DNA from: Bugula neritina
Taxonomy: Eukaryota > Animalia > Bryozoa
NCBI GenBank assembly: GCA_964035545.1
Contig: CAXIUT010000172.1
Coordinates: 1 to 14,582 of the forward strand
Direction: 5' to 3'
Length of the DNA: 14,582 nt
Position numbers and translations under genes: made by a program
Shown: positions 1-14,582 of the stretch, in pieces
Layout: the number at the start of each line of letters is the position of its first letter
Position numbering within the stretch: position 1 is the stretch's first letter
The notes under the pieces: generated by a model
Seen by the model: only the letters and a program-made list of their open reading frames with translations
Told to the model about the DNA's origin: nothing
The model's database searches: none

Positions 1-75
1 CCCAACCCCAACCCCAACCCCAACCCCAACCCCAACCCCAACCCCAACCCCAACCCCAACCCCAACCCCAACCCC
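1..75 (+). repeat. Left telomere, (CCCCAA)n
   Basis: Perfect tandem CCCCAA repeats from base 1 to 75, the Tetrahymena-type telomeric repeat. Confidence 0.98.
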
Positions 76-352
76 TTTTTTTGTAAAGTTCTAGTTCATA
101 TTTGATTGTAAAAAAATAATAAAAAATTAATCAGTTCTTTAAAGCTAGGATCTATAACAACCTTCTTCATTTCTTTATAGAATGATTGATTTGCTAAATA
201 TTTTTTTATTTTTATATTAAAAACATAGAAGTAGATTAAGGTTGATTTGATTGAGAATGATGGAATAAGCTGCTGTTATTTATATTAATGATAGATTTCT
301 AAAGGTATATTAGATAAGATGAAATGGAAAACTAACTCAAAACAAAAAAAGA

Positions 353-741
353 TCATTCTTCAATGAGATGATTAATCCATTTAACGTTGATCGGTTTATT
401 CACTTCCCAGATATTGTTATTTTATTCCCATGGATCATCATTTATCTCCAATAGAACAACATTTGGAAACAATTCATTAAATTCCATTTGTGGAATTGAC
501 CCCCAGTATGCACTATCTTGTCTCGCCTGTGCCAACTACAACTCCTTTTGATATACTAAACTCATATAAGCGTTATGTTCTTTTGTCTGAATATGACAAC
601 GATTGCCTAAATACTACATCAAGTACAAATCAAACGGAATGAGTAGTTGTGGTTTTGACAAAGTAAACAAATCCAGTCGTCGTATTTGTTTGGCTTACCA
701 GATGGAGAACCTCGAGGACTGATAGTACTCTTCTACGACAT
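353..741 (-). CDS. RanBP2-type zinc finger protein (122 aa)
   Basis: MSEKSTISPRGSPSGKPNKYDDWICLLCQNHNYSFRLICNRC matches W-x-C-x2-C-x3-N-x6-C-x2-C. A 20-nt intron at 607-626 must be removed to complete the finger. Ends in TGA at 353-355. Confidence 0.85.
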
Positions 742-1011
742 CAAAAATAAAATTATTATGTAGAATAAACCTTTATATCGAATACACCATCAAAACAGCT
801 GAACTTTTATTCTAATACTTTATAGCACAAACAACAACCAATATACAACTAAAAAACTCATAAGATGGCCATTATCTATAAAAAACACCAATTTTTATAA
901 GTTCAATATTTAGTCTCGAATAAATGCCGATTAAGCAATTTATGAATTCTTTTTGATTTGATTTGATTTGATATGAAGATATCTAATAATAAAGTGTATG
1001 AAATGAGTTGA

Positions 1012-1483
1012 TCATTTTTTAGCATGTCCCAAAGCAGTTCTACTTTTATCGTATACATGTTGTGATTTAGTCCATTTTTATCGATATTCATCAAGAGCAT
1101 CTTGATCTTTATCAAAGTTAGATTTCTTTGTTATGAAAGGATTCAAAACCGATAACCTCTTTTGCTCTTACCCTTTCAGATAATTATCTCTGAGTGGAAT
1201 CAAAAGTACTTATACTATGTCTTGAATGTGTTGTTTGGATTATAGCTTTGGAAGTTAAGCCAGTTACTGGTTGACTGCTGAAAATTATCCTTATTTATTC
1301 ATGAAGTACTTCGGTAAGAGTTGGCTTTTGTGTCTAATTCTGATCTTTTCGTTCTTTGTAGAAGTGGAAGTTATCAGTTCTTTGAGGATCACAGCGCTAC
1401 TCATACCAATTTCCAACTAGTGTTTTTGCCTTGAATTGACTCGGATAGTCTGAAGTTTGTTTAACAATAAAGTCCCTGTACAT
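1012..1483 (-). CDS. GNWxEER-motif ciliary microtubule inner protein-like (CFAP68/95/107-type) (143 aa)
   Basis: MYRDFIVKQTSDYPSQFKAKTLVGNWYEER...LDEYREKWTK. The TLVGNWxEER motif is typical of axonemal MIPs. 20-nt introns at 1290-1309 and 1190-1209 restore the frame to TGA at 1012-1014. Confidence 0.7.
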
Positions 1484-1692
1484 TGCTAAGTTACAATTAT
1501 AAATATATAATTTATAGAAAAACTAAATCATATGAACAAATGCTACACGTTGGCTAGTTTTTGAGTAAAATAGTTATTTTAGTGAATGATTTAAGTTTAT
1601 TGTGTTTGAGATGGTATAATAAATAAGTTGGTTAATCAATAGGGAGGCAATAATTAAAATTGAATGTAGCAAAAAATATCAATAAATTACCT

Positions 1693-2365
1693 TCAGACCA
1701 ACTACTATTCCATGTTGGTACTGATGTTACTACTTTTTGAACAAGTAGCTAACCTTTTAACTTCTTCTTCAACTCTTATCTTCTTCTTCCCCTGCCTCTT
1801 TCTCCTATATTCAGCCTTTGTTTTCTATGTCTTCTTAGCTATTTGCCTTCTTCTTTGAGGTCGCTTTTGGAAAAGGTGAGTGAGCTCTTGAATATACTGA
1901 TTGGCGGAGTTATTGGTCTGGAGGTGTCTGTGGGAGGTGAGGCGGATGTGTTGTTGGTAGTCGATGTAATGGGTTTTGCAGAGTTGGCAGTAGTTGCTGG
2001 GAGGTCCTGCTTTCTTGTTGTTTTGTCCAGCTGTCAAGCCTACTTCTATAATGGATTTTTCTTGAGCATTTTGAATCTTCTAGTCGAAGCGAATCCTCTC
2101 AAAGCTAGTGTTTTCTTTACAGAATCTCTGAGTGGAACAAAGTATACCTCATCACAGGGTAGGAGGAAAGCAGGAGTGAAGTGAAGTTTGTCTGCATTGA
2201 AGTGAGGAACAATGCTTCCTGTGGCTGAAGGGCTTCTACATTGACTCACAAGTACTTGCTGGGGAGTTAGAAGGTCACAGTTAAGGCCAGTTCTGGACAA
2301 TGAGTAGAGACTTTGTTAAGTACCAATTGGTGGGGGTTAGTGTTAACAGTTTGATTCTTTAGCAT
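1693..2365 (-). CDS. Dbf4-type zinc finger (zf-DBF) protein (210 aa)
   Basis: NYCQLCKTHYIDYQQHIRLTSHRHLQTNNSANQYIQEL matches the Dbf4 motif C CCHH finger, followed by a basic NLS-like tail. 20-nt introns at 2236-2255 and 2128-2147 join the two ORF-track fragments. TGA at 1693-1695. Confidence 0.75.
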
Positions 2366-2956
2366 TGGAATTATAAATTTAGCAATCCCCTTCCATATTT
2401 TTAAATTTATTTACCTCTATCTTCTCCTCTCTTCCAGCTCTTCTTCTCCCTTTTTTCCTTCTTCTTCACCCCATTAGACAGATTTCTCCGATCTAGGATA
2501 ACTAGCTTTTAAAAATCATTCAAAATGGCGCTTAAAAACAATGATTTAACCCAATATCTCAAAAACAATAAATATCTATTCAATTAACTTTCGAATGATT
2601 GAAAAATGGATACATCTTTGATAAATTTTACTTTTTTTGACAATATAAAAAGCGGACATTTCGCACATACTGGAAAGATTCAGTTAAAATAGTGATAGAA
2701 TATTAATGTAGCATACCATTACTATCAAATCAAACAACTAATATTCATTTAATACTGATTGGAATTTCAACTCGTATGACTTTGAAAACATTTATCAGCT
2801 GAGTCTTTAATTTTTAGATATGCCTATCTATTGGTTTCGAATAGGTCTTTCGAATATTTGTCTTGTTTTGTGGATAAGGAGAGCTGTGTTTGAGGTGTTG
2901 CAATGATGATTTGGTTGGGAATAGATTAAATAATAATTAATCATTGATAATATTTT

Positions 2957-3416
2957 ATGGTGAAATCTACTCCCCTTTTGAAGAAGAGAATCGTTAAGAA
3001 GAGAACTCTTAAATTTACTCGTTTCCAATCTGACCTTTACGGAGGAAGACTTGCTGCTAGCTGGCGCAGACCTAGAGGTACTTTATAGAGGATGTAGGTA
3101 TTGACAACAGGATGAGAAGAAGATTTAGAGGCAACAAAAAGATGCCTAAGATCGGTTACGGATCAGACAAAACAACCAGATACTATTTACCCAATGGATT
3201 GAAGAAATTTGTTGTCCATAACATCAAGGATCTTGATGTTCTTCTCATGAATAATCGTAAATTCTGTGCAGAAATCGCAAGTAACGTAAGTTCAAGAGTA
3301 CTTTTGACATTATTTAGAAAAGAGCTGAAATCGTTAAAAGAGCTCAACAAATCCGAGTCAAGATCACCAACGCTCGTGGAAAAGTAAGAACCGAATAAAA
3401 GAAACAAGAAGCCTGA
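2957..3416 (+). CDS. RPL32: 60S ribosomal protein L32 (eL32) (139 aa)
   Basis: [15 protein letters not shown]...[18 protein letters not shown]...MPKIGYGS...[20 protein letters not shown]...VRTEE. 20-nt introns at 3078-3097 and 3298-3317. One in-frame TAA (3396-3398) at a conserved Glu. Confidence 0.97.
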
Positions 3417-3559
3417 TGTCAATCTATTTAAATCCCTATCTTCATCTATCAACACTTAACTCACTCTATAATCCCATCAAAAGATCTCACTGATTGCTAT
3501 AGATATGAGTTATATCTATGCTGATTTATTCCATTTGTAATATAATTGATAAGGTGATA

Positions 3560-3826
3560 ATGTCTAAAGCTGATGGATTGCTTATCGGAACAATAGTGTT
3601 TGTAGTGCTGGGTATCATTGCAGCTGTCGTCTTCTACATCTACATCGGAATGAAGAGTCCAACTCAGGCTGTATCGGCAAATCGCAAGTACATTTTAATT
3701 AATACTAGAGTGGGTATGGTATCTGTTTTGATTGGAACTATCAGTATGTGGATTATGTGGGCCTGCACCTATATGCATCAAATGAATCCGATTATTCAAC
3801 CCATCCTGGAAGCCAAAACTAGCTGA
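3560..3826 (+). CDS. V-type ATPase V0 subunit e (Vma9/ATP6V0E-like) (81 aa if intron spliced)
   Basis: Two hydrophobic helices and the C-terminal MWIMWACTYMHQMNPIIQP signature. Probable in-frame 21-nt intron at 3688-3708. Start at 3560 is preferred over the ORF-track start at 3518. Confidence 0.9.
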   Translation: MSKADGLLIGTIVFVVLGIIAAVVFYIYIGMKSPTQAVSANRKYILINTRVGMVSVLIGTISMWIMWACTYMHQMNPIIQPILEAKTS

Positions 3827-3928
3827 TTGCTATCCATAAATATTGTCATAGATTATTGATTAATTAGTACTGCTAAGAATAGATTCAAGAGGATAAAGAC
3901 AACTAATTAAATAATACAAAGAATGAAA

Positions 3929-4780
3929 TCAGAACATTCTAGTTTTTGATTTTTCTGGTTGATAGGCAGGTCCTACACTTTGTTCCACTGCTTCTTTAAG
4001 TTCCATTATTTATCTTAAAAATTCAGTCCTGATTTATTGTCCTGAAGGCAGATAGGTCAACTTTTATTCATCTATCTTTTATTGCATGAACAAATTCAAC
4101 ACTAAATGCTTATATATTTATGTCTCTTCATGCATTGATGGTTTGGGTAGAGTTCCTCTGGTTTTAACAAGCAAATCTTTCCACCATCCCATTTCCTACA
4201 ATCCTGTATCATTCACTCCCGTTGCTCTTTTGAATGCCTATACTGCTCTATGTCTGGTCTCGTTATGTTTCTTTTATATCATTATATAAATATCTTTGAA
4301 TTCCTAGTCAATTTGCTTGAGAATGGCTTTATATTAGTCATCTAAAGTCCTCTTATTCTTTTTCATTTAGATATCAACATGTCTAATTCTTTATAGTTCT
4401 TAATCTAATATTCTAAGGTTATCTTAGTTGTCTCTTGATATATTTCCTATTGAATTTTTACTAGGAACCACTCTATGATCTTTATGAACTGCACTTCCAT
4501 AGATACAATTTACACATAGAAGTTTAAACTAGTTTTAGCAATAGAGAGTGATAAAGTTGTTATGGACTAGACATTTTTGAGGAAGTTAGTTTTAATAGCT
4601 AACTCGATATAGATCCAGACAGGTACAGAAGTTTTATTTTCTGCTTTGAAGACTTTATATATATTCTGCATGATCTTATTGTAGAAGGACAGATGCTTTA
4701 GTTGGTGAGCCTTGGTCTCGCATGCTATTATAGGAATTAGGAGAGTAAGGTAGAGGACGTCTTTCTTTACGATTCGACAT
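3929..4780 (-). CDS. B-box zinc finger plus coiled-coil protein (283 aa)
   Basis: Uninterrupted frame under UAR=Glu. CLVHNNFITLYCENEFKLLCVNCIYGSAVHKDHRVVP is a type 2 B-box, followed by a helical coiled-coil-like region. No intron needed. Confidence 0.85.
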
Positions 4781-4857
4781 AGTTTATCAATATAATTATT
4801 TTAAAATCAAGATATCATTTCAAATCTAATAGTAAATGAAAGCATATGGAATGAATA

Positions 4858-5867
4858 TCATTATTTCTTTTTATTCTTAAATCCTGATCTAAATATAAGA
4901 TCCCAGAAAGGTGAACTAACTCCATATCCAGCCAACTCGTCTCCGAAATGATGTCTGTTGTGATACTTTTGCATCCGATGAAACCAACTTCCCTTATACT
5001 TCACTGTATCTATATGATGTAAAGCATAGTGAGAAATATCATATATCACATACTATAACAAAAATGATGACCAGAATATTGCATAAAGAAGAGGATCTTC
5101 AAGCTTAATTATTCGTTCAAGTAAAGATAACACTAAAAAATAGATTGCCAAAAATAGAGGAACAGGTAAAACTAAACGGTCGCTAAATAGATAAATAAGT
5201 ACGGGTCATTAGGCAGCATATGATGGATTCCATGGGTGAAAAAATGGATGTATCTTGCGATATTACTATTGGGAATTAGACCTTATGAATGGAATAAAAA
5301 TCTGTGAAGACAATATTCGACGAGACTGAATGTTAGCATGCCAAGAGCGATTGTTAGAATGATTTCGAGAGCGTTAAGAGTGTCCCAGGCTGAGACACAG
5401 TAGAAGTAGTATGCGATGAAGAGAGAAGGGGCGAAGGGTACGACGTACCATTTGTTATGAGTGAGGACTTCGATGAATTAGTTTGCAAAGAGTCGAGGAG
5501 ATTCTACGAAGAGCCAGTGAGGAGAATGTATGAGTTTCATGTAGGTTTAGTGGTCTGCGTTGTAGATTTGTGTGTTGAGAGGTTTATTGGGGTCAATATA
5601 CTGTTCTATTTATTTTTTGAAGGAGCCAATGGCCATGGTGGTGGCCATTCCCAAGGTGAGAGGGTGATGGAACTTCATTTCTTCTTCTATGTGTTTCATA
5701 TTTTGATTTTTGAGGAGGAGTCCTCCTCCTGGGTGATGAGGTTTGAAGGTGGTGACATCTAGGATGTAGTCGTTGTAGAGGAGAAGAGTTTTTTAATTTT
5801 ACTAGGCATATGTTCTAACTTGTTCTAGATTTTAAAATTTGAGATTGTTGTTGTGAGTCGTACTCAT
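4858..5867 (-). CDS. FA2H: Fatty acid 2-hydroxylase with N-terminal cytochrome b5 domain (FA2H/Scs7-like) (329 aa)
   Basis: b5 motif DVTTFKPHHPGG, then His boxes EYCLHRFLFH, HFFTHGIHH, YDISHYALHH and KYHNRHHF, plus GYGVSSPFWD. 20-nt intron at 5183-5202. Ends TAA(E) then TGA. Confidence 0.93.
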
Positions 5868-5979
5868 AATAAGATCAGCAATTACAACTTAATATTGGAA
5901 TTCAAACTATTATTCCAATAAAATCAATAAATCTATTAATAAAATAATAAAACTAATTATTCTAAACGATTTTATCCCA

Positions 5980-7082
5980 TCAAATACCATCAAAGAAAGG
6001 ATGTTCCATTGCCTGCTTAGCTGTAAACCTTTTCTTCTGCATCTATCATATCTTACGTAGTCCAACTTGAGCAAGTGCTTTATCAAATCTAAAGCCTACC
6101 AGGTAGCATTGCATTCATTGCCTTTGTTTACAAATTACTCATAGTTAGAAGGCTATTCAGCTTTGATGTCCCCATTGTCAAAGGCTACGATGATATCGAA
6201 ACAGATATTTTATTTTTTGTGTCCTCGTCGTTCAGTTAGTTTGTAATCTTTTATATAGTTTACAACCTATTTTGCTCCAAGGATCTTTGTTAGCTTTAAG
6301 ATTTGGTCTATTTGATCGTTGCCCATCAAAAAAGGAGTCTTTTTGAATATCTAAATCCAAACATATCTACCATTCCAGCCATTATCATTCCTGCAGCCCA
6401 ACAATCAACTCGGTAATCATACTGAGTATTAGAAAAATAAAGTTCTGGTGCTTTGTAGTAGGTAGATGCGACTTTAGTGTTGTTTTACTTGGAAGGGAAG
6501 TAGTACTAGCTGAGTCCCAAGTCTATTATTTTCAGTTGTTTTAGGTTATGGTTGATAAGAACGTTAAAAGGTTTGATGTCTCTATGCATGATTCCTTTGG
6601 AGTGGATGTAGTCAAGTCCCTATCTATTTTACTGAGTACTTAAAAGAGTTGTTTCATGTATATTTTGATATCTCTGAGGGAAAGAGTTGGATATAGTTAT
6701 CTGAAATCTTGATGCTAGAAATGTTAGGTAATCAGACTGGCTGTTTTTAAGTGAGGGCATTTGACTATATCAACCAGTTTTATGATGTTAGGGTGGGAAA
6801 GAGTTCTTAGTAGGTGGTACTATCTTTTTATTTTAGTTGGTTTTATAGGTAGGAGAACTTTGACTGCAACTTTTTCTTTAGTATTTTGGTTGCGTCCTTC
6901 GAAGACATGGGCGTAGCGGCCTCTTCCAATTTTATGAGAAATGGTGTACTGGTCAAGTTATCTTGATTAGAAGGTTAGTACCCCCAGGGAATATCGATGG
7001 TGTCGTAGAGGATGGGTTTTAGATCCTATCTTTTGAGGTTTATAGAAGAATAAGGATGAACAGATGTTTATTTTTTCTCCAT
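5980..7082 (-). CDS. Casein kinase II alpha-like Ser/Thr kinase, divergent (340 aa)
   Basis: [67 protein letters not shown]...[13 protein letters not shown]. Four 20-nt introns at 6962-6981, 6620-6639, 6351-6370 and 6037-6056. Confidence 0.92.
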
Positions 7083-7427
7083 TCAAATATTTAAATTACT
7101 AATTATCTATTTATAGCCACTATCCAACATTAAATCAATAAAAAATAAATAGATATCCTTTGATTGGTTATTTAAATATTAAGTTATGGTTAGATTGGTC
7201 TTTATGATATAATTTTAGTTTAGATAATAAAAAAGTCATTGTTTGTCAAGAAGATAAAGACTTTTGAATGATTTATTTGTTATTATAAGTTATTTTTATC
7301 AGAGCAGTAGGGCATTACTTTTATGATAAAAGAGTTAACTTGAATATATAATTTATCGAATAGTAAATGGATAATAATATCTTTTTCAATAATAATAAAC
7401 AGATAATCATATAAAATCGACTGTAAA

Positions 7428-8117
7428 TCATTTATTTATTGATTTATTGTTAATTTTAATGAAGTTGTTAATGTTGATTTTACCAAATGCTTCATTTATT
7501 TTTAGTTTATAACTTTTATTTTTTATCTTCTACCTTCTTGATCCTTATTTTCTTAACGATATTGTTGTCTTCTTTGCAATAAAGTTTCTTTATTACAGTT
7601 ATAATAAACTAAAATCTTCTTCATCTTTGTTCTTTTCATAATATTAAATCTTCTTTGATTAATTTGTTTTTAGCCAAAAGTTTTATTTCCCTTTGCAAGG
7701 CTACAAATCTGGTAGTACTGAACTATTCTCTTTTCCTCTTTGATTTTTATTTAAAAGATTAATAGAAAAAGGTGAACGAGGACTTATTTTACTTGTAAAT
7801 CTTGCTAGACTTCTAGACTATCCTAATGAAGGATATCTATTATTGTTTGACTGACAGTTCAAGTAATTTTACTTTTAATCTATGTTTACTGAATTAATTT
7901 ATGTTTTTTTATCAGTTGATTGAGTTCTAATATGACTTAAGGCAGTCCTAGTAGTTTTCCTATTGAGTAGGGAGTTATAAAGAAAGGATGATTATGTGTT
8001 TTTGTTGTATTTGGACTGTAATTTATTAGTTAGTACTTTTATACTATTCATTTTGGAGAAAGTTTTGAACATATTTTATTTTTGAATTCTTCTATAAAGT
8101 TGATTTTGTTCTAACAT
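7428..8117 (-). CDS. Hypothetical K/N/S-rich protein (~229 aa)
   Basis: 690-nt ATG-to-TGA frame under UAR=Glu that fills the gap between genes (MLEQNQLYRRIQKENMFKTFSKM...). No recognisable domain. Possible in-frame 21-nt intron at 8016-8036. Confidence 0.6.
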
Positions 8118-8272
8118 TCTATGAGTTAAAATATTATAAGATAATAGATATTGAAATTATGTTTAATTTAATGTATAGATTTAAAGTTGAATAAAAGCCA
8201 AATAGAGTGGAAGAAGATAAAAAACAATGAAAATAATATTGATATTGAATGATTGATAATTGATATGGTTAA

Positions 8273-9253
8273 TCAATGCAGGGTATTTGGGTTGATATGT
8301 TTGCGAACAAAAACAAGATCTTAAAGTCCCCCATGTTATTTAGTCCATTGTGCTAGCTTTATGACTTCCTGGATAGTTAACTACTGAAAAGTTTAATCGT
8401 CGCAATTTTAAGGTCGAGATCCTATTTTATAGAAAAGAAAATCTTGAGAACGAAGATAATTAAGGAGAGCTAAAGATTTTTAATCATAATTTTTATGGTC
8501 TTTTCCGATAGAGAATCCAGACCACTCGACAACAATGATAATATCAGGAGATCTTTATATAGTTTTTTTCATTCCTTCTAGACACTCTATCTCAAGTCTT
8601 TCGACATCAATTAAGGCAAAATTGACTTTTACATCAGCAGGTAGGACATTATCAACTAAATTGATCATAACTTTTTATTTATAGTCAGGATAATCCAAAC
8701 CATGATCAATAATATCCTCAGATGTATAAATCTGACTTGCAGCTGTATTGTCGTAATTAACTCTGATATGTCCTTAAGCTTAGAAGTTACTAGCTGCTAC
8801 TTTGTAAATAGTTGTTTGGTTTTGTAATCCATTAAGATAAATATTTTTGTAAAGCAAGTCTCTAGTTAAACTCATAGGTTAAAATAAATATAGTTTACCT
8901 TTTGGACCTGATGCTTTCGCATAGACTATTGCTTATAGTCCAATATGTGCTCCAATATTTAAAATTGTATCTCCTTCCTTGACAAAACGGCCAAAAGTTC
9001 TCATGTTATTTGGTTCCCAAGTTCCCTGGGTTCTTATTACTTTTGATATTGCTTCATCAACTGGATCCAATAGCACATTGATCCCATCATAAATTGTGCT
9101 GACAAGTAATTCTCTATCCGATATCATGAAGTTCAATTTACTTTTGAAGTTTTTAACATCATAGCTACATAATATATTAGCTGCTGATAAGTAGTATAGT
9201 TGTAAGAGGAAGATAACGATCAGTAAGGGACAGTTATACCTTGTTTGAATCAT
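8273..9253 (-). CDS. FkbM-family SAM-dependent methyltransferase with N-terminal signal/anchor (326 aa)
   Basis: GTWEP, VKEGDTILNIGAHIGL (motif I), GPKGKLYLFEP (E encoded by TAA), NFALIDVERLEIECLEGM, IIVVEW. Hydrophobic N-terminus. Intronless. Confidence 0.88.
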
Positions 9254-9454
9254 ACAATCACTAATAACTAATTACAGATTTTAAATTTATTCAATATTTA
9301 AATTTATATTCATATAAGTGACTTTTTCACTACTTTTAAAAATATATATCATCAAAAAGAGATAAACTATTTATAAACAATAAGATAAACTATAAATTCA
9401 AATATATATAAACTTTTGATTAAGATAAATAGCTATTTATAAATTATTAGAGAA

Positions 9455-10462
9455 ATGCAGGTTAAACTAGAATTCTAAAAATAAATACATTTAACTAATC
9501 TAGTAGGAATCAATACAGTATAAGAACTTATTCAAAGAGCTAAACTACTCTTTACTCGTCTTCCTTCTTTCTTCTAATTCAAAATTAAAAAACAAGATGG
9601 ATAAGTTCTTGATGCAGTTGCCTTGAACTTACTTCAAAGTGAAGCAAAGAAAGTAAAATTATTTATCAGTCCTGTTAAATAAGTTTCTCATGATTTGATG
9701 GAAATTTAAAGTGAAGATTCATATATCAAGTTATGTGACCAAAGTGAAGTTTAGGAGCTAAATAGTGAATAGACTTCAATAAAATAATAAAGAAGACATT
9801 TAGGGAGATAATCAATGTTTCTTAAGTCAGTTTAGATTGACGAAGGATGCTAATACAATATCGAAGAGTTCATCAGATAAAATCAAGATTTCATTAAAAA
9901 AGATGATAAAAATAGGGTTATTTATGAACATAAGGAAAATAACAAATAATAAAATATTAAAAAAGAGTCTATGTTAAAAGAAAAACCTGTAAAAACATAA
10001 ATCTACTATAAAAGATCTATGTAAAAATAATAAATTCTTTAAAAAAATGAAAAAAAGTTAGTTTAAGAAAAGATAGCTGAATAAAAATAGTAATAAGAAA
10101 TAATATTCAATAATGTTCAATGTGATATCTGTTCAGCTTTCCCTATTCGTGGTCCTGTCTTTAAATGTTTGGTTTGCTAGAATTATGATCTTTGCCAATA
10201 ATGCTAAAAGATATATCATCATTTTCATCCTACTTTAAAAATGACCAGACTCTAGCACTATCCAACTGAAATAAGAGTTTGTTTTACTAAATAGGCTTCA
10301 AAATACATGAAAAAGCATCTAAAATAAGAATAGGGAAGATTGAGATAATAAAGAAGATAAAAGCTAATGGGCAAGAAGGCATAGATAAATGAAGTAGATC
10401 CTAAGACTTTAAAGAGTAGATAAGTTCGTGGAAATAATTTTTTGAAGGCTCTTTTCGGATGA
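9455..10462 (+). CDS. PB1-like plus ZZ zinc finger protein (p62/NBR1-like architecture) (335 aa)
   Basis: ZZ finger VQCDICSAFPIRGPVFKCLVCENYDLCQECEKIYHHFHP at ~10115-10230. N-terminal MQVKLEFEKEIH...KVKLFI resembles a PB1 domain. Missed by the ORF track because it is rich in TAA/TAG. Confidence 0.85.
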
Positions 10463-10500
10463 CAGAAGTGATTTTATGAATTATAATTATAATAATTAAT

Positions 10501-11396
10501 ATGGCTAATGTCCAAGGCTTTAGAAATTTGAATGACCAGAACAATAATAACAGAGGTCAAGGAAACGACGGAAACTATTAAAATTTGAACGCAGTCGAAG
10601 ATATTCCTTTTATGAATCCAATGAAGGGAGATCAACGTCCTCCCATGGATTAAACCATCCCCTATACTCTTAAAATAATATGCTGCCCTGACTTTAAAAT
10701 ATGTTCTAGTACTCTTATCTTTTTAGTAGCCATCTGGGTTTTGTATATAATTTGTCTTGTTAATGGAGTTTAAACCAAAAATCAATAAGTTTTAGCTGTA
10801 TCTTAACTTGTTTTGATAGATTTTGGAGCTGCTCTTGGCATTTTGATCAAAGAAGGACAAATCTATAGATTAATCACTGCAACCTTTCTCCATGTCAATC
10901 TCTTACACATCTTAATGAATTCCATTAGTTTGCTCATCTTTCTCACTAGATTCTAAAAAATATATCCCATTCATACTCCTTTCATCCTCCTGGTCTCCAC
11001 TATTACTGGTATCTTCTTACCTATTTAGGCTTTATGCTGAGTGTTGTCTGCAATAGAACTAATACCTCTGTTGGAGCATCTACAGCCATTTTTGGAATTC
11101 TTGGAGGATTTATTGCCTATTTGATTATTAACTGGGTCGCTCTTGAAAGATTTGGTCATGTGAGGTCGACTTTGACTTGCATCATTGGAATAATAGTTGT
11201 TTTTTCATTACTTTTTTCAATAGGTTAGGCCATCGATGGAATAGCTCATATTGGAGGGCTAGTAGGAGGTTTGTTGATGTCTTTAGCCATATTACCTGGC
11301 ATTCAAAACAAGAGTAAAATAATAACAACAATTGGAATTGGAGCGATCGCGGTGATGAACTTAGTAACTTTTTTGGTGTTCTTTTTGACTGATTGA
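10501..11396 (+). CDS. Rhomboid intramembrane serine protease (291 aa)
   Basis: GQIYRLITATFLHVNLLHILMN, catalytic SVGASTAIFG and AHIGGLVGG, multiple transmembrane helices. 20-nt intron at 11009-11028. Confidence 0.93.
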
Positions 11397-11431
11397 CTTT
11401 GAAATGATAATCATAAAATATTATTTAACAA

Positions 11432-11911
11432 ATGCTGAAGTATTGTACTAGATTCTTCTACTCAAACGTGAAGTCATACACTAACCTAGAAGAATTAAAT
11501 ACTTATCTTTTAAAGAATAAATTCGCACACTCTCTCGTATATTTCAGAGCTAGCTGGAATCCTCTATGCTAAATAGCAGACCAACAACTGAATACCCTTG
11601 CCTCACAGAATAGATTTTTGGAAGTCATTAAAGTAGATAGCGATATTTCACCCAAAATAGCTAGGCATTATGCTGTAAAGAACTAACCTGAATTTGTTTT
11701 TTGTTTATATGGAGATGAAGTGATCAGACAAATCGGGCCCAACGAGGAAGGACTTCATTAAAAATTGAACAGAATGGTGAAATTGGGACAGGAGACAGAT
11801 ACAGACTATTTACTTTAAGGACAGAGATGGTCTCCTTACGGCACTCGTTTTGAAAGGTACTATATGTAGGTGCTAAAACCCTTATATGAAGCAAATGTAA
11901 GTGATATATGA
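11432..11911 (+). CDS. Atypical thioredoxin-fold protein (WNPLC), probably mitochondrial (159 aa)
   Basis: LVYFRASWNPLCE...VIKVDSDISPKIARHYAVKNEPEFVF...GDEV..IGPN is a thioredoxin fold lacking the first Cys. The N-terminus MLKYCTRFFYS resembles a mitochondrial presequence. Intronless. Confidence 0.85.
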
Positions 11912-11995
11912 GATCAATAGATATCATCAACTTATAAAGCTGTTATAGTTTTGATGTTAGATCTTTGAATAGTATATTTAATTGAATGATAATCA

Positions 11996-12497
11996 TCAGA
12001 AATCTTAATGGTCTAAGATCCGGTTACATTCTTTGAGTACTTCATTACGTTTGATTCCCAAATGGAAATCTTATCCCAAATTACACATATCGAACAATTT
12101 CTTGTTATGTTTTTGAAGCAACCTAAATCATTTTATAGCTACATAGGACTAACAAAAGTGTAGCTGAGGGGGATAGTTGCAAGAGGCCACCACACCATAG
12201 CTTTATTAACGTATATTCTCCAAGATAGAAGGATATTAGCTATCATGCATGAGTATCCTACTCCCTTGAGGACGATGTCATAGTTATACTAACTGGATAA
12301 TGAGTCGAATACCGTTTAGCTAGATATGCCCAATCTCTTTATTCTTGAGTTTTATAGAGATGAGTGTCGAAATTGATTATGTATTGGTTAAGAAAATTTT
12401 TTCTAAGCTAACTAGCTTGGAGTTAATCTGGACTATAACCTCTTTTAAACTACCAATCCTATTTCTCTCTGATGTAGCGTCTGATTTGGGCCGACAT
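11996..12497 (-). CDS. Small two-TM membrane protein, possible ciliate-specific mitochondrial respiratory complex subunit (153 aa)
   Basis: MSAQIRRYIREKEDWEFKRGYSPDEL...ERDWAYLAKREYNYD, two hydrophobic segments, then KHNKKLFDMCNLGEDFHLGIKRNEVLKECNRILDHEDF. 20-nt introns at 12293-12312 and 12123-12142. The gene model is solid, but the functional call is only a recollected resemblance. Confidence 0.7.
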
Positions 12498-14465: not shown

Positions 14466-14582
14466 GGGGTTGGGGTTGGGGTTGGGGTTGGGGTTGGGGT
14501 TGGGGTTGGGGTTGGGGTTGGGGGTTGGGGTTGGGTGGGGGTTGGGGTTGGGGTTGGGGTTGGGGTTGGGGTTGGGGTTGGG
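14466..14582 (+). repeat. Right telomere, (TTGGGG)n
   Basis: Tandem GGGGTT repeats to the end of the sequence, with two imperfect units near 14520-14540. Complementary orientation to the left telomere, so the molecule is complete. Confidence 0.98.

Follow-up and report, generated by a model that had tools for sequence, protein, structure and literature searches.

The 14,582-nucleotide stretch of DNA analyzed here (hereafter the window) contains 15 segments of exactly 20 nt that, judged from the sequence, are most probably (roughly 0.8) ordinary spliceosomal introns, U2-type with GT-AG ends, in a ciliate with TAR as glutamate codons and with introns that would have collapsed to 20 nt across its genome. 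The ciliate is a cobiont within a 216-Mb host assembly and has telomeres of the C4A2 type. The presence of these telomeres at both ends of the window indicates that it is a complete macronuclear mini-chromosome. In the peritrich nuclear code (NCBI table 30) TAR specifies glutamate, and the code of this ciliate is of that type, with TAA and TAG at conserved glutamate positions and TGA as the sole stop. Indeed, TAA or TAG is the codon for the glutamate in 6 of 16 kinase APE motifs and in 9 of 24 HRDLKPEN motifs, a TAG aligns with a glutamate of CK2 homologues, and a tRNA with anticodon CUA is present in locus L004. When the 15 segments are removed, the window contains eight long ORFs, each with TGA as its only stop. 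The features, by position and strand, are as follows.

1..76, no strand: left telomere, CCCCAA repeats, read directly
353..741, minus: gene A, small zinc-finger-like protein, one intron; ORF restored without 607-626, weak NZF-type Pfam hint only
607..626, minus: gene A intron, 20 nt, GTACTTGATGTAGTATTTAG, phase 1
1012..1531, minus: gene B, unknown protein, two introns; ORF restored without both, no homology support
1190..1209, minus: gene B intron, 20 nt, GTACTTTTGATTCCACTCAG, phase 2
1290..1309, minus: gene B intron, 20 nt, GTACTTCATGAATAAATAAG, phase 0
1693..2365, minus: gene C, DBF-type zinc finger protein, two introns; Pfam zf-DBF on the large exon, ORF restored
2128..2147, minus: gene C intron, 20 nt, GTATACTTTGTTCCACTCAG, phase 0
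2236..2255, minus: gene C intron, 20 nt, GTACTTGTGAGTCAATGTAG, phase 2; codon-score frame test passed on both flanks
2957..3416, plus: ribosomal protein L32e (RPL32) gene, two introns; exon pieces map to PF01655
3078..3097, plus: RPL32 intron, 20 nt, GTACTTTATAGAGGATGTAG, phase 1; exact Pfam colinearity, frame test passed
3298..3317, plus: RPL32 intron, 20 nt, GTACTTTTGACATTATTTAG, phase 0; exact Pfam colinearity (positions 90 to 91), frame test passed
4858..5990, minus: cytochrome b5 and fatty-acid hydroxylase gene, one intron; PF00173 and PF04116 on exon pieces, ORF restored
5183..5202, minus: cytochrome b5/fatty-acid hydroxylase intron, 20 nt, GTACTTATTTATCTATTTAG, phase 2
5980..7082, minus: CK2-alpha-like protein kinase gene, four introns; homologue alignment, Pkinase matches on exon pieces
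6037..6056, minus: kinase intron, 20 nt, GTAAGATATGATAGATGCAG, phase 0; gap-free junction against homologues, KLDY to KKRFTAKQA
6351..6370, minus: kinase intron, 20 nt, GTAGATATGTTTGGATTTAG, phase 0; gap-free junction, AGM to IFKK against AGMIFRKEPF of homologues, frame test passed
6620..6639, minus: kinase intron, 20 nt, GTACTCAGTAAAATAGATAG, phase 0; gap-free junction, same-position introns in L032 and L031
6962..6981, minus: kinase intron, 20 nt, GTACTAACCTTCTAATCAAG, phase 2; gap-free after conserved WG, same-position introns in L032 and L031
10501..11396, plus: rhomboid-family protease gene, one intron; PF01694 on both flanking pieces
11009..11028, plus: rhomboid intron, 20 nt, GTATCTTCTTACCTATTTAG, phase 1; PF01694 colinearity
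11996..12497, minus: gene N, unknown membrane-like protein, two introns; ORF restored
12123..12142, minus: gene N intron, 20 nt, GTAGCTATAAAATGATTTAG, phase 2; frame test passed
12293..12312, minus: gene N intron, 20 nt, GTATTCGACTCATTATCCAG, phase 2; frame test passed
14466..14582, no strand: right telomere, GGGGTT repeats and a few irregular units, read directly

A preliminary description of this DNA had proposed 15 introns of exactly 20 nt with the form GTA-N11-A-N3-AG, and all 15 segments conform, with restored ORFs. Each has the GT and AG ends of a spliceosomal intron on the coding strand (three or four on the plus strand and 11 or 12 on the minus strand), and each has A at +3 and at position 15, that is, at -6 from the 3′ end. 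Given an A frequency of 0.21 at the other inner positions, the chance probability of A at position 15 in all 15 segments is ~7e-11. Positions 4-14 show no consensus and positions 16-18 are T-rich; the claim that a polypyrimidine tract is absent is thus essentially right, as the T-rich stretch 3′ of the A is only 3 nt long. The GC content of the introns is 0.32 versus 0.31 for the window, and their density in the window is ~1 per kb (15 in 14.6 kb). In a set larger than these 15, introns in phases 0, 1, and 2 number 13, 7, and 12, respectively.

The segments behave as introns, in line with the preliminary description, and their removal restores frames that are colinear with protein models or homologues. 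In RPL32 the colinearity is exact: the three exon pieces correspond to positions 2-23, 25-90, and 91-108 of Pfam Ribosomal_L32e (PF01655), and position 24 comes from the split codon. The spliced kinase forms a single alignment block of ~305 aa with the full-length CK2-like proteins P0066, P0031, and P0118, with no gaps at any of the four junctions. In the rhomboid protease, the two pieces contain PF01694 positions 2-33 and 57-116 and are colinear to within one residue. For genes A, B, C, and N it is the reading frame that supports removal.

The same pattern is found in other DNA of the ciliate. In an independent set of 28 loci from its other contigs (100.8 kb, window excluded), length 20 is the only one at which GTA..AG pairs are in excess, with 214 pairs versus 158 +/- 12.5 at other lengths. 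When divided by the base at -6, pairs with A number 113 at length 20 versus 57 +/- 8 at other lengths and pairs with another base 101 versus 101, such that the entire excess at length 20 has A at position 15. With the window included (115 kb), length 20 has 46 occurrences of GTA..ATNTAG versus 6.1 +/- 2.7 at each other length from 14 to 60, and the GTA..AG length counts, which cover up to 115 kb, show no detectable excess at 19 or 21-34 nt. The fixed length therefore holds outside the window on length counts, and the A at position 15 is practically invariant there as well. Junction lengths derived from homology alone are exactly 20 nt in 18 of 28 cases and fall in the 3n+2 frame class in 23 of 28. 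Three of the 28, all in kinesin, have implied lengths of 1 mod 3 (19 or 22 nt), a hint of rare variants. At other loci, all three introns that break kinase domains are 20 nt long with A at position 15, and the introns read in L021, L028, and L029 have GT..AG ends too. Two of the window's kinase introns also have counterparts at the same positions in other ciliates: the intron at 6620-6639 is 20 nt in L032 and 23 nt in L031, and that at 6962-6981 is 21 nt in L032 and 23 nt in L031. These orthologous segments are GT..AG but differ in sequence, and both L032 introns have A at -6.

We propose that these introns have been compressed to a lineage-specific minimum length. Their architecture comprises a 5′ GUA, 11 unconstrained bases, the A at position 15 as putative branch point, a short U-rich trinucleotide, and AG. 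The module from the candidate branch A to the 3′ splice site (A, three bases, AG) matches that of the 15- and 16-nt heterotrich introns and stays constant as length varies in relatives. The 14-nt spacing between the 5′ splice site and this A is most likely the smallest loop that the lineage's spliceosome is able to close. Since no consensus for U2 pairing surrounds the A, the A and the 3′ AG would have to be picked largely by spacing, which would make recognition effectively distance-constrained with no need for new machinery. A mere floor at 20 nt, however, predicts a Paramecium-like tail, and the absence of a detectable one in the length counts favors a constraint tighter than a simple floor. 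From the letters of the DNA, then, we infer that removal takes place at the RNA level, that the A at position 15 acts in branching, and that the length of 20 nt originated as a steric minimum.

A more far-reaching reading, which is possible although we hold it to be doubtful, is that the spliceosome itself is changed and that length is the primary signal, the A lying exactly 14 nt beyond the 5′ splice site and 5 nt before the 3′ end, in a system that would have arisen independently of the 15-nt heterotrich introns. Any transcript containing GUA-N11-A-N3-AG would then be spliced. The lack of a tail at 19 or 21-30 nt in 115 kb and of a sequence consensus around the A are consistent with such a caliper, as are the sense-strand counts in validated exons, where 20-nt instances of the full motif reach about half the number at other lengths (4 versus 9.5 +/- 3.4) and GTA..AG pairs at 20 nt are the fewest of all lengths (17 versus 25.3 +/- 4.7). 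However, this depletion of decoys is not significant (z about -1.7), and the four motif-perfect 20-nt decoys in sense orientation within homology-validated exons (30.7 kb) are unspliced. None of the four is T-rich at positions 16-18, which indicates that sequence matters beyond spacing. Of the ruler-like splicing suggested in the preliminary description, the fixed 20 nt and the invariant A stand, whereas these decoys, the 21 nt at an orthologous site of a related TAR=Glu ciliate, and the 19 or 22 nt of the kinesin junctions argue against a pure ruler. The core spliceosome and U2 are, moreover, reported as conserved in peritrichs: all ciliates examined, three peritrichs among them, keep both the core spliceosome and the GUAGUA motif of U2 (PMC13685798). 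SF3B1 is encoded on the ciliate contig C204, which has TAR sense codons; searches for SF1-HH and U2 snRNA, dominated by the host and run on an assembly in which the ciliate part is incomplete, matched the host only. Somewhat less likely still is an independently evolved two-sided caliper, in which spacing defines the intron and only a 14-nt distance from 5′ splice site to branch A together with a 5-nt distance from A to 3′ site is accepted, although it would, if true, explain the absence of a length tail. A special measuring spliceosome, like the 15-nt lariat loops suggested in the preliminary description, is a matter of inference.

Ciliates such as Euplotes use programmed frameshifting frequently, and the segments could in principle be bypassed in translation, by a programmed frameshift or a ribosome hop, or be artefacts of assembly or annotation. 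We consider this very improbable. All segments share GT..AG ends, GTA, and A at -6, like the RNA-verified heterotrich introns (PMC9505925), and all three phases are represented. The DNA was assembled with the segments in place in independent runs from three studies, and the differences in length (20, 21, and 23 nt) and sequence among the orthologous GT..AG segments of the two other ciliates point to intron behavior and not to slippery sites. Least probable of all, although the developing macronucleus of ciliates does lose numerous short pieces of DNA, is that the segments are leftover germline (IES-like) DNA in a germline or unprocessed window, as telomeres at both ends mark a processed somatic chromosome, the boundaries are GT..AG rather than TA-type, and in four runs compared with the window, all of them DNA contigs, no contig lacked the segments or had joints.

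The idea is less new than first supposed, since peritrichs are already described as having intron lengths in a narrow range (PMC13685798) and a "molecular caliper" has been put forward before (PMC6009652). The 20-nt introns amount to a lengthened form of the tiny introns of fixed length known in other ciliates, and an origin independent of the 15-nt heterotrich class is plausible on phylogenetic grounds. A second and presumably independent lineage of ciliates in which introns have one length provides a natural comparison for asking how small a spliceosomal lariat can be and which distance is fixed. When introns of 15, 16, 20, and 21 nt are compared, the spacing from A to AG is constant and that from the 5′ splice site to the A depends on the lineage. 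Annotation is affected as well: the usual alignment and gene-finding programs, with a default minimum intron of 20 nt or more, would break most genes of the ciliate, and its rare genetic code and its hidden place as a cobiont among the contigs of another species are further obstacles.

The earlier likening to Stentor (15 or 16 nt, A at -6) and to the variable introns of Paramecium agrees with PMC9505925, PMC13685798, and PMC6009652. Paramecium introns are variable, at 20-34 nt (Jaillon 2008, as cited in PMC6009652). Like the ciliate studied here, Paramecium is of oligohymenophorean type, with GT-AG introns of reduced signals, a lower limit of 20 nt, and disfavored 3n lengths, but its lengths spread over ~15 nt, whereas here an excess is detectable at 20 nt alone and not at 21-34 nt. 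Narrow, Paramecium-like length distributions are described for three peritrichs, Vorticella campanula, Epistylis hentscheli, and Campanella sinica (PMC13685798), and the ciliate shares with peritrichs both narrow lengths and the TAR=Glu code; the main text of that paper, supplements aside, gives no peritrich intron length, motif, or branch-A position. In the Bigelowiella natans nucleomorph, introns are 18-21 nt and a "molecular caliper" has been proposed (Gilson 2006, as cited in PMC6009652). The very narrow range (~19-20 nt), the canonical GT-AG ends, and the proposal of a measured length are common to both systems. In contrast, on that account the nucleomorph introns are markedly AU-rich with no discernible branch A, whereas here an A is present at -6 practically without exception and the intron GC equals that of the surrounding DNA, and the evolutionary origins are unrelated. 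The heterotrichs Stentor coeruleus and Blepharisma have introns of 15 and 16 nt with GTA, A at -6 (position 10 of 15 or 11 of 16), and AG (PMC9505925, PMC13685798). They share with the present introns a near-single length class, a strict 5′ GTA, the A at -6, a short T/W-rich stretch before AG, and the absence of a branch-site consensus, and heterotrichs have the canonical major spliceosome. However, the introns described here are 20 nt long, with the five additional bases all located between GTA and the A; they have a 3n+2 length and occur in all phases, whereas heterotrich introns are 3n in length and favor phase 0; they are dense in the window, whereas heterotrichs are intron-poor; and they belong to a phylogenetically distant lineage with TAR=Glu and C4A2 telomeres.

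The preliminary description had proposed that 15 segments of the window are introns of one length. Indeed, all 15 are 20 nt long, run from GT to AG on the coding strand, and carry an A at +3 and an A at position 15 (A15, that is, position −6). Positions 4–14 show no consensus among the 15 segments; positions 16–18 are T-rich. Removal of the segments restores the reading frames, as asserted, giving eight long open frames that all end in TGA. In RPL32, the Pfam family Ribosomal_L32e matches the three exon pieces at 2–23, 25–90, and 91–108, with position 24 being the split codon, and colinearity of the predicted protein is exact across both introns. When the spliced kinase is aligned with three full-length CK2-like proteins, it forms one block of ~305 residues, with zero gaps at any of the four junctions, and in the rhomboid gene PF01694 is colinear with two pieces to within one residue. 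For the window genes A, B, C, and N, the evidence for introns consists of frame restoration and the motif. Retention of a 20-nt segment shifts the frame and in 12 of the 15 cases places a TGA ahead of the normal stop, in line with the selection against 3n introns that is known from ciliates. DNA assemblies of four sequencing runs (X4, X7, X6, and X8) cover the window introns and contain no joints; run searches turned up no RNA run with this ciliate in it. We infer that the segments are removed at the RNA level and that A15 would be used as the branch point.

The window spans an entire linear chromosome, capped by telomeric repeats at both ends, each read directly:

1–76: left telomere, CCCCAA repeats
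~14466–14582: right telomere, GGGGTT repeats with a few irregular units

This 14.6-kb telomere-to-telomere mini-chromosome carries ~15 genes on both strands, separated by very short spacers. In run X4, a contig of 1,964 bases agrees with the window as far as about 2762, beyond which it runs on into GGTTGGGG repeats, which points to an alternative site of chromosome breakage and telomere addition in the gene C/RPL32 interval of another isolate. It is C181 in an assembly of 321 contigs and 216 Mb, in which the contigs of tens of Mb (C1–C9) use the standard code, have long introns (hundreds of bases), and encode many axonemal dyneins, whereas TAA and TAG are sense codons on the small contigs; the ciliate contigs are roughly C10–C321. 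The window therefore comes from a ciliate cobiont or contaminant in the assembly of another organism, and the assembly is a mix of the two, host and ciliate. Only part of the ciliate is represented: four dynein heavy-chain matches come from it, and a profile search of the assembly with the dynein family PF12774 yielded zero ciliate junctions. DNA of the same ciliate also turns up in runs filed under three different organism names. PL0344, a ciliate that reads UAA as Lys and UAG as Glu, was rejected as the source; its median intron is 57 bp.

Among kinase genes, TAA or TAG occupies the invariant APE-motif Glu in 6 of 16 cases and the HRDLKPEN Glu in 9 of 24; neither codon ever occupies the Lys of HRDLKPEN. 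In the alignment of the CK2 homologues, Glu stands opposite a TAG of the window. TGA is the only stop in all genes of the window and in L001–L030, which are other loci of the same ciliate. TAA and TAG encode glutamate in this ciliate; with TGA as the stop, this is the peritrich-type code. Two tRNA genes probably encode suppressor tRNAs that read the reassigned codons:

L004, 3658–3729, minus strand: tRNA gene on another contig, anticodon CUA (reads UAG), labelled Pyl by ARAGORN; Rfam tRNA, 62 bits
L013, 2274–2344, minus strand: second tRNA gene, with an odd anticodon loop

An Rfam search of the window and 19 loci returned two tRNAs only and zero snRNAs.

The statements made here for the whole genome draw on 28 other loci of this ciliate, 100.8 kb of DNA around kinase genes, and on coordinate rows from a profile search of contigs. 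In the 28 loci, GT..AG pairs were counted by length, independently of gene models.

GT..AG pairs in the 28 loci, at length 20 and at other lengths (10–60)
GTA..AG: 214 at length 20; 158 ± 12.5 at other lengths
GTA..AG with A at −6: 113 at length 20; 57 ± 8 at other lengths
GTA..AG with another base at −6: 101 at length 20; 101 at other lengths
GT followed by C, G, or T: 405 at length 20; 381 ± 27 at other lengths, no significant excess

The length-20 excess is present with A at −6 and absent with other bases, so the whole excess carries the A, and the expected enrichment of A15 beyond the window is thereby borne out in these loci. With the window included (115 kb), the stricter 3′ module ATNTAG occurs 46 times at length 20, compared with 6.1 ± 2.7 times per other length from 14 to 60. 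Lengths 19, 21, 22, and longer show no excess in the same 115 kb. A codon model built from long ORFs proved too weak for use; a second one, built from kinase domains, chose the correct frame in 79% of 25-codon windows and confirmed the peak at length 20. Clustering of the second model's frame-switch points gave 277 clusters, mostly spurious, and was abandoned.

Junction lengths were also worked out from exon-by-exon Pfam matches (CCT chaperonin, kinesin, and Ras families; 28 junctions on ciliate contigs) by comparing where neighbouring exons end and begin in the genome and in the profile. Exactly 20 nt is implied at 18 of the 28, and the frame shifts by 2, as it does with 20 nt, at 23; a shift of 0 occurs at none. 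The remaining five, all in kinesins, have a frame shift of 1. Two, on contigs C108 and C272, leave enough space for a pair of introns; the coordinates of the three others are:

C182, 2483–2504: kinesin junction, frame shift of 1
C208, 20168–20181: kinesin junction, frame shift of 1
C170, 47840–47870: kinesin junction, frame shift of 1

These coordinates suggest an occasional 19- or 22-nt intron, with 22 nt the best fit at the C170 junction. At three loci the kinase domain match breaks off early, each time interrupted by a 20-nt GTA..A15..AG segment (3/3).

Close relatives of the window kinase are encoded on public contigs of two other ciliates (L031 and L032), the second of which also reads TAA and TAG as Glu. 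Both contain short segments at the same two kinase positions:

L032, 1938–1958: GT..AG segment, 21 nt, A at −6, same position as window 6962–6981
L032, 2281–2300: GT..AG segment, 20 nt, A at −6, same position as window 6620–6639
L031, 72–94 and 417–439: segments of 23 nt each, same two positions

Three of these four orthologous CK2 introns have A at −6. The L032 segments differ in sequence from the window introns, and shared positions with divergent sequence are the behaviour expected of introns. In the 21-nt case the A-to-AG spacing is kept and the 5′ part is longer.

Heterotrich introns of 15/16 nt are built alike, with GUA, a conserved A at −6, a brief run rich in U, and AG (PMC9505925, PMC13685798); the introns described here carry five extra bases in the part between GUA and the A. 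Among the introns compared (15, 16, 20, and 21 nt), the spacing from A to AG is constant, whereas the stretch that separates the 5′ splice site from the A varies with lineage. The U2 GUAGUA motif and the core spliceosome are reported to be kept in all ciliates examined, three peritrichs among them (PMC13685798). SF3B1 is encoded on a ciliate contig. Among the matches listed, SF1-HH and U2 snRNA fall on host contigs only, which says little because few candidates were scored and ciliate representation is partial. The simplest interpretation is that a canonical spliceosome works here at its steric minimum; it would pick the branch A and the 3′ AG by position and not by U2 pairing.

Alternatively, the spliceosome of this lineage may contain a dedicated caliper, measuring intron length as a recognition signal. 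The missing tail toward longer introns exceeds what a mere floor predicts. Decoys bear on this point. Motif-perfect GTA-N11-A-N3-AG matches, counted at length 20 versus other lengths in the window exons and the kinase domains of L001–L030, are about two-fold underrepresented on the sense strand of these validated exons (4 versus 9.5 ± 3.4) and show no such shortage on the antisense strand (10 versus 6.8). The sense-strand shortage is suggestive of selection against cryptic introns and would favor a caliper; however, it is not significant, and all four surviving decoys lack T-rich positions 16–18, so sequence contributes besides spacing. An earlier decoy test in long open frames was confounded, since such frames run through introns, and was replaced by the test in homology-validated exons.

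Literature searches returned no explicit "20 nt" intron class in ciliates, nor one in peritrich genome papers with intron data. Tiny introns of near-fixed length are established in heterotrichs (15/16 nt; PMC9505925, PMC13685798), short introns with a 20-nt floor and a range of 20–34 nt in Paramecium (PMC6009652), and an 18–21-nt class, for which a caliper mechanism was proposed, in chlorarachniophyte nucleomorphs (PMC6009652). A 2026 survey reports narrow intron-length distributions for three peritrichs, with no length or motif in the text consulted (PMC13685798). The 20-nt class described here, 3n+2 in length and in an intron-dense ciliate with a peritrich-type code, is an addition to these known tiny-intron systems.
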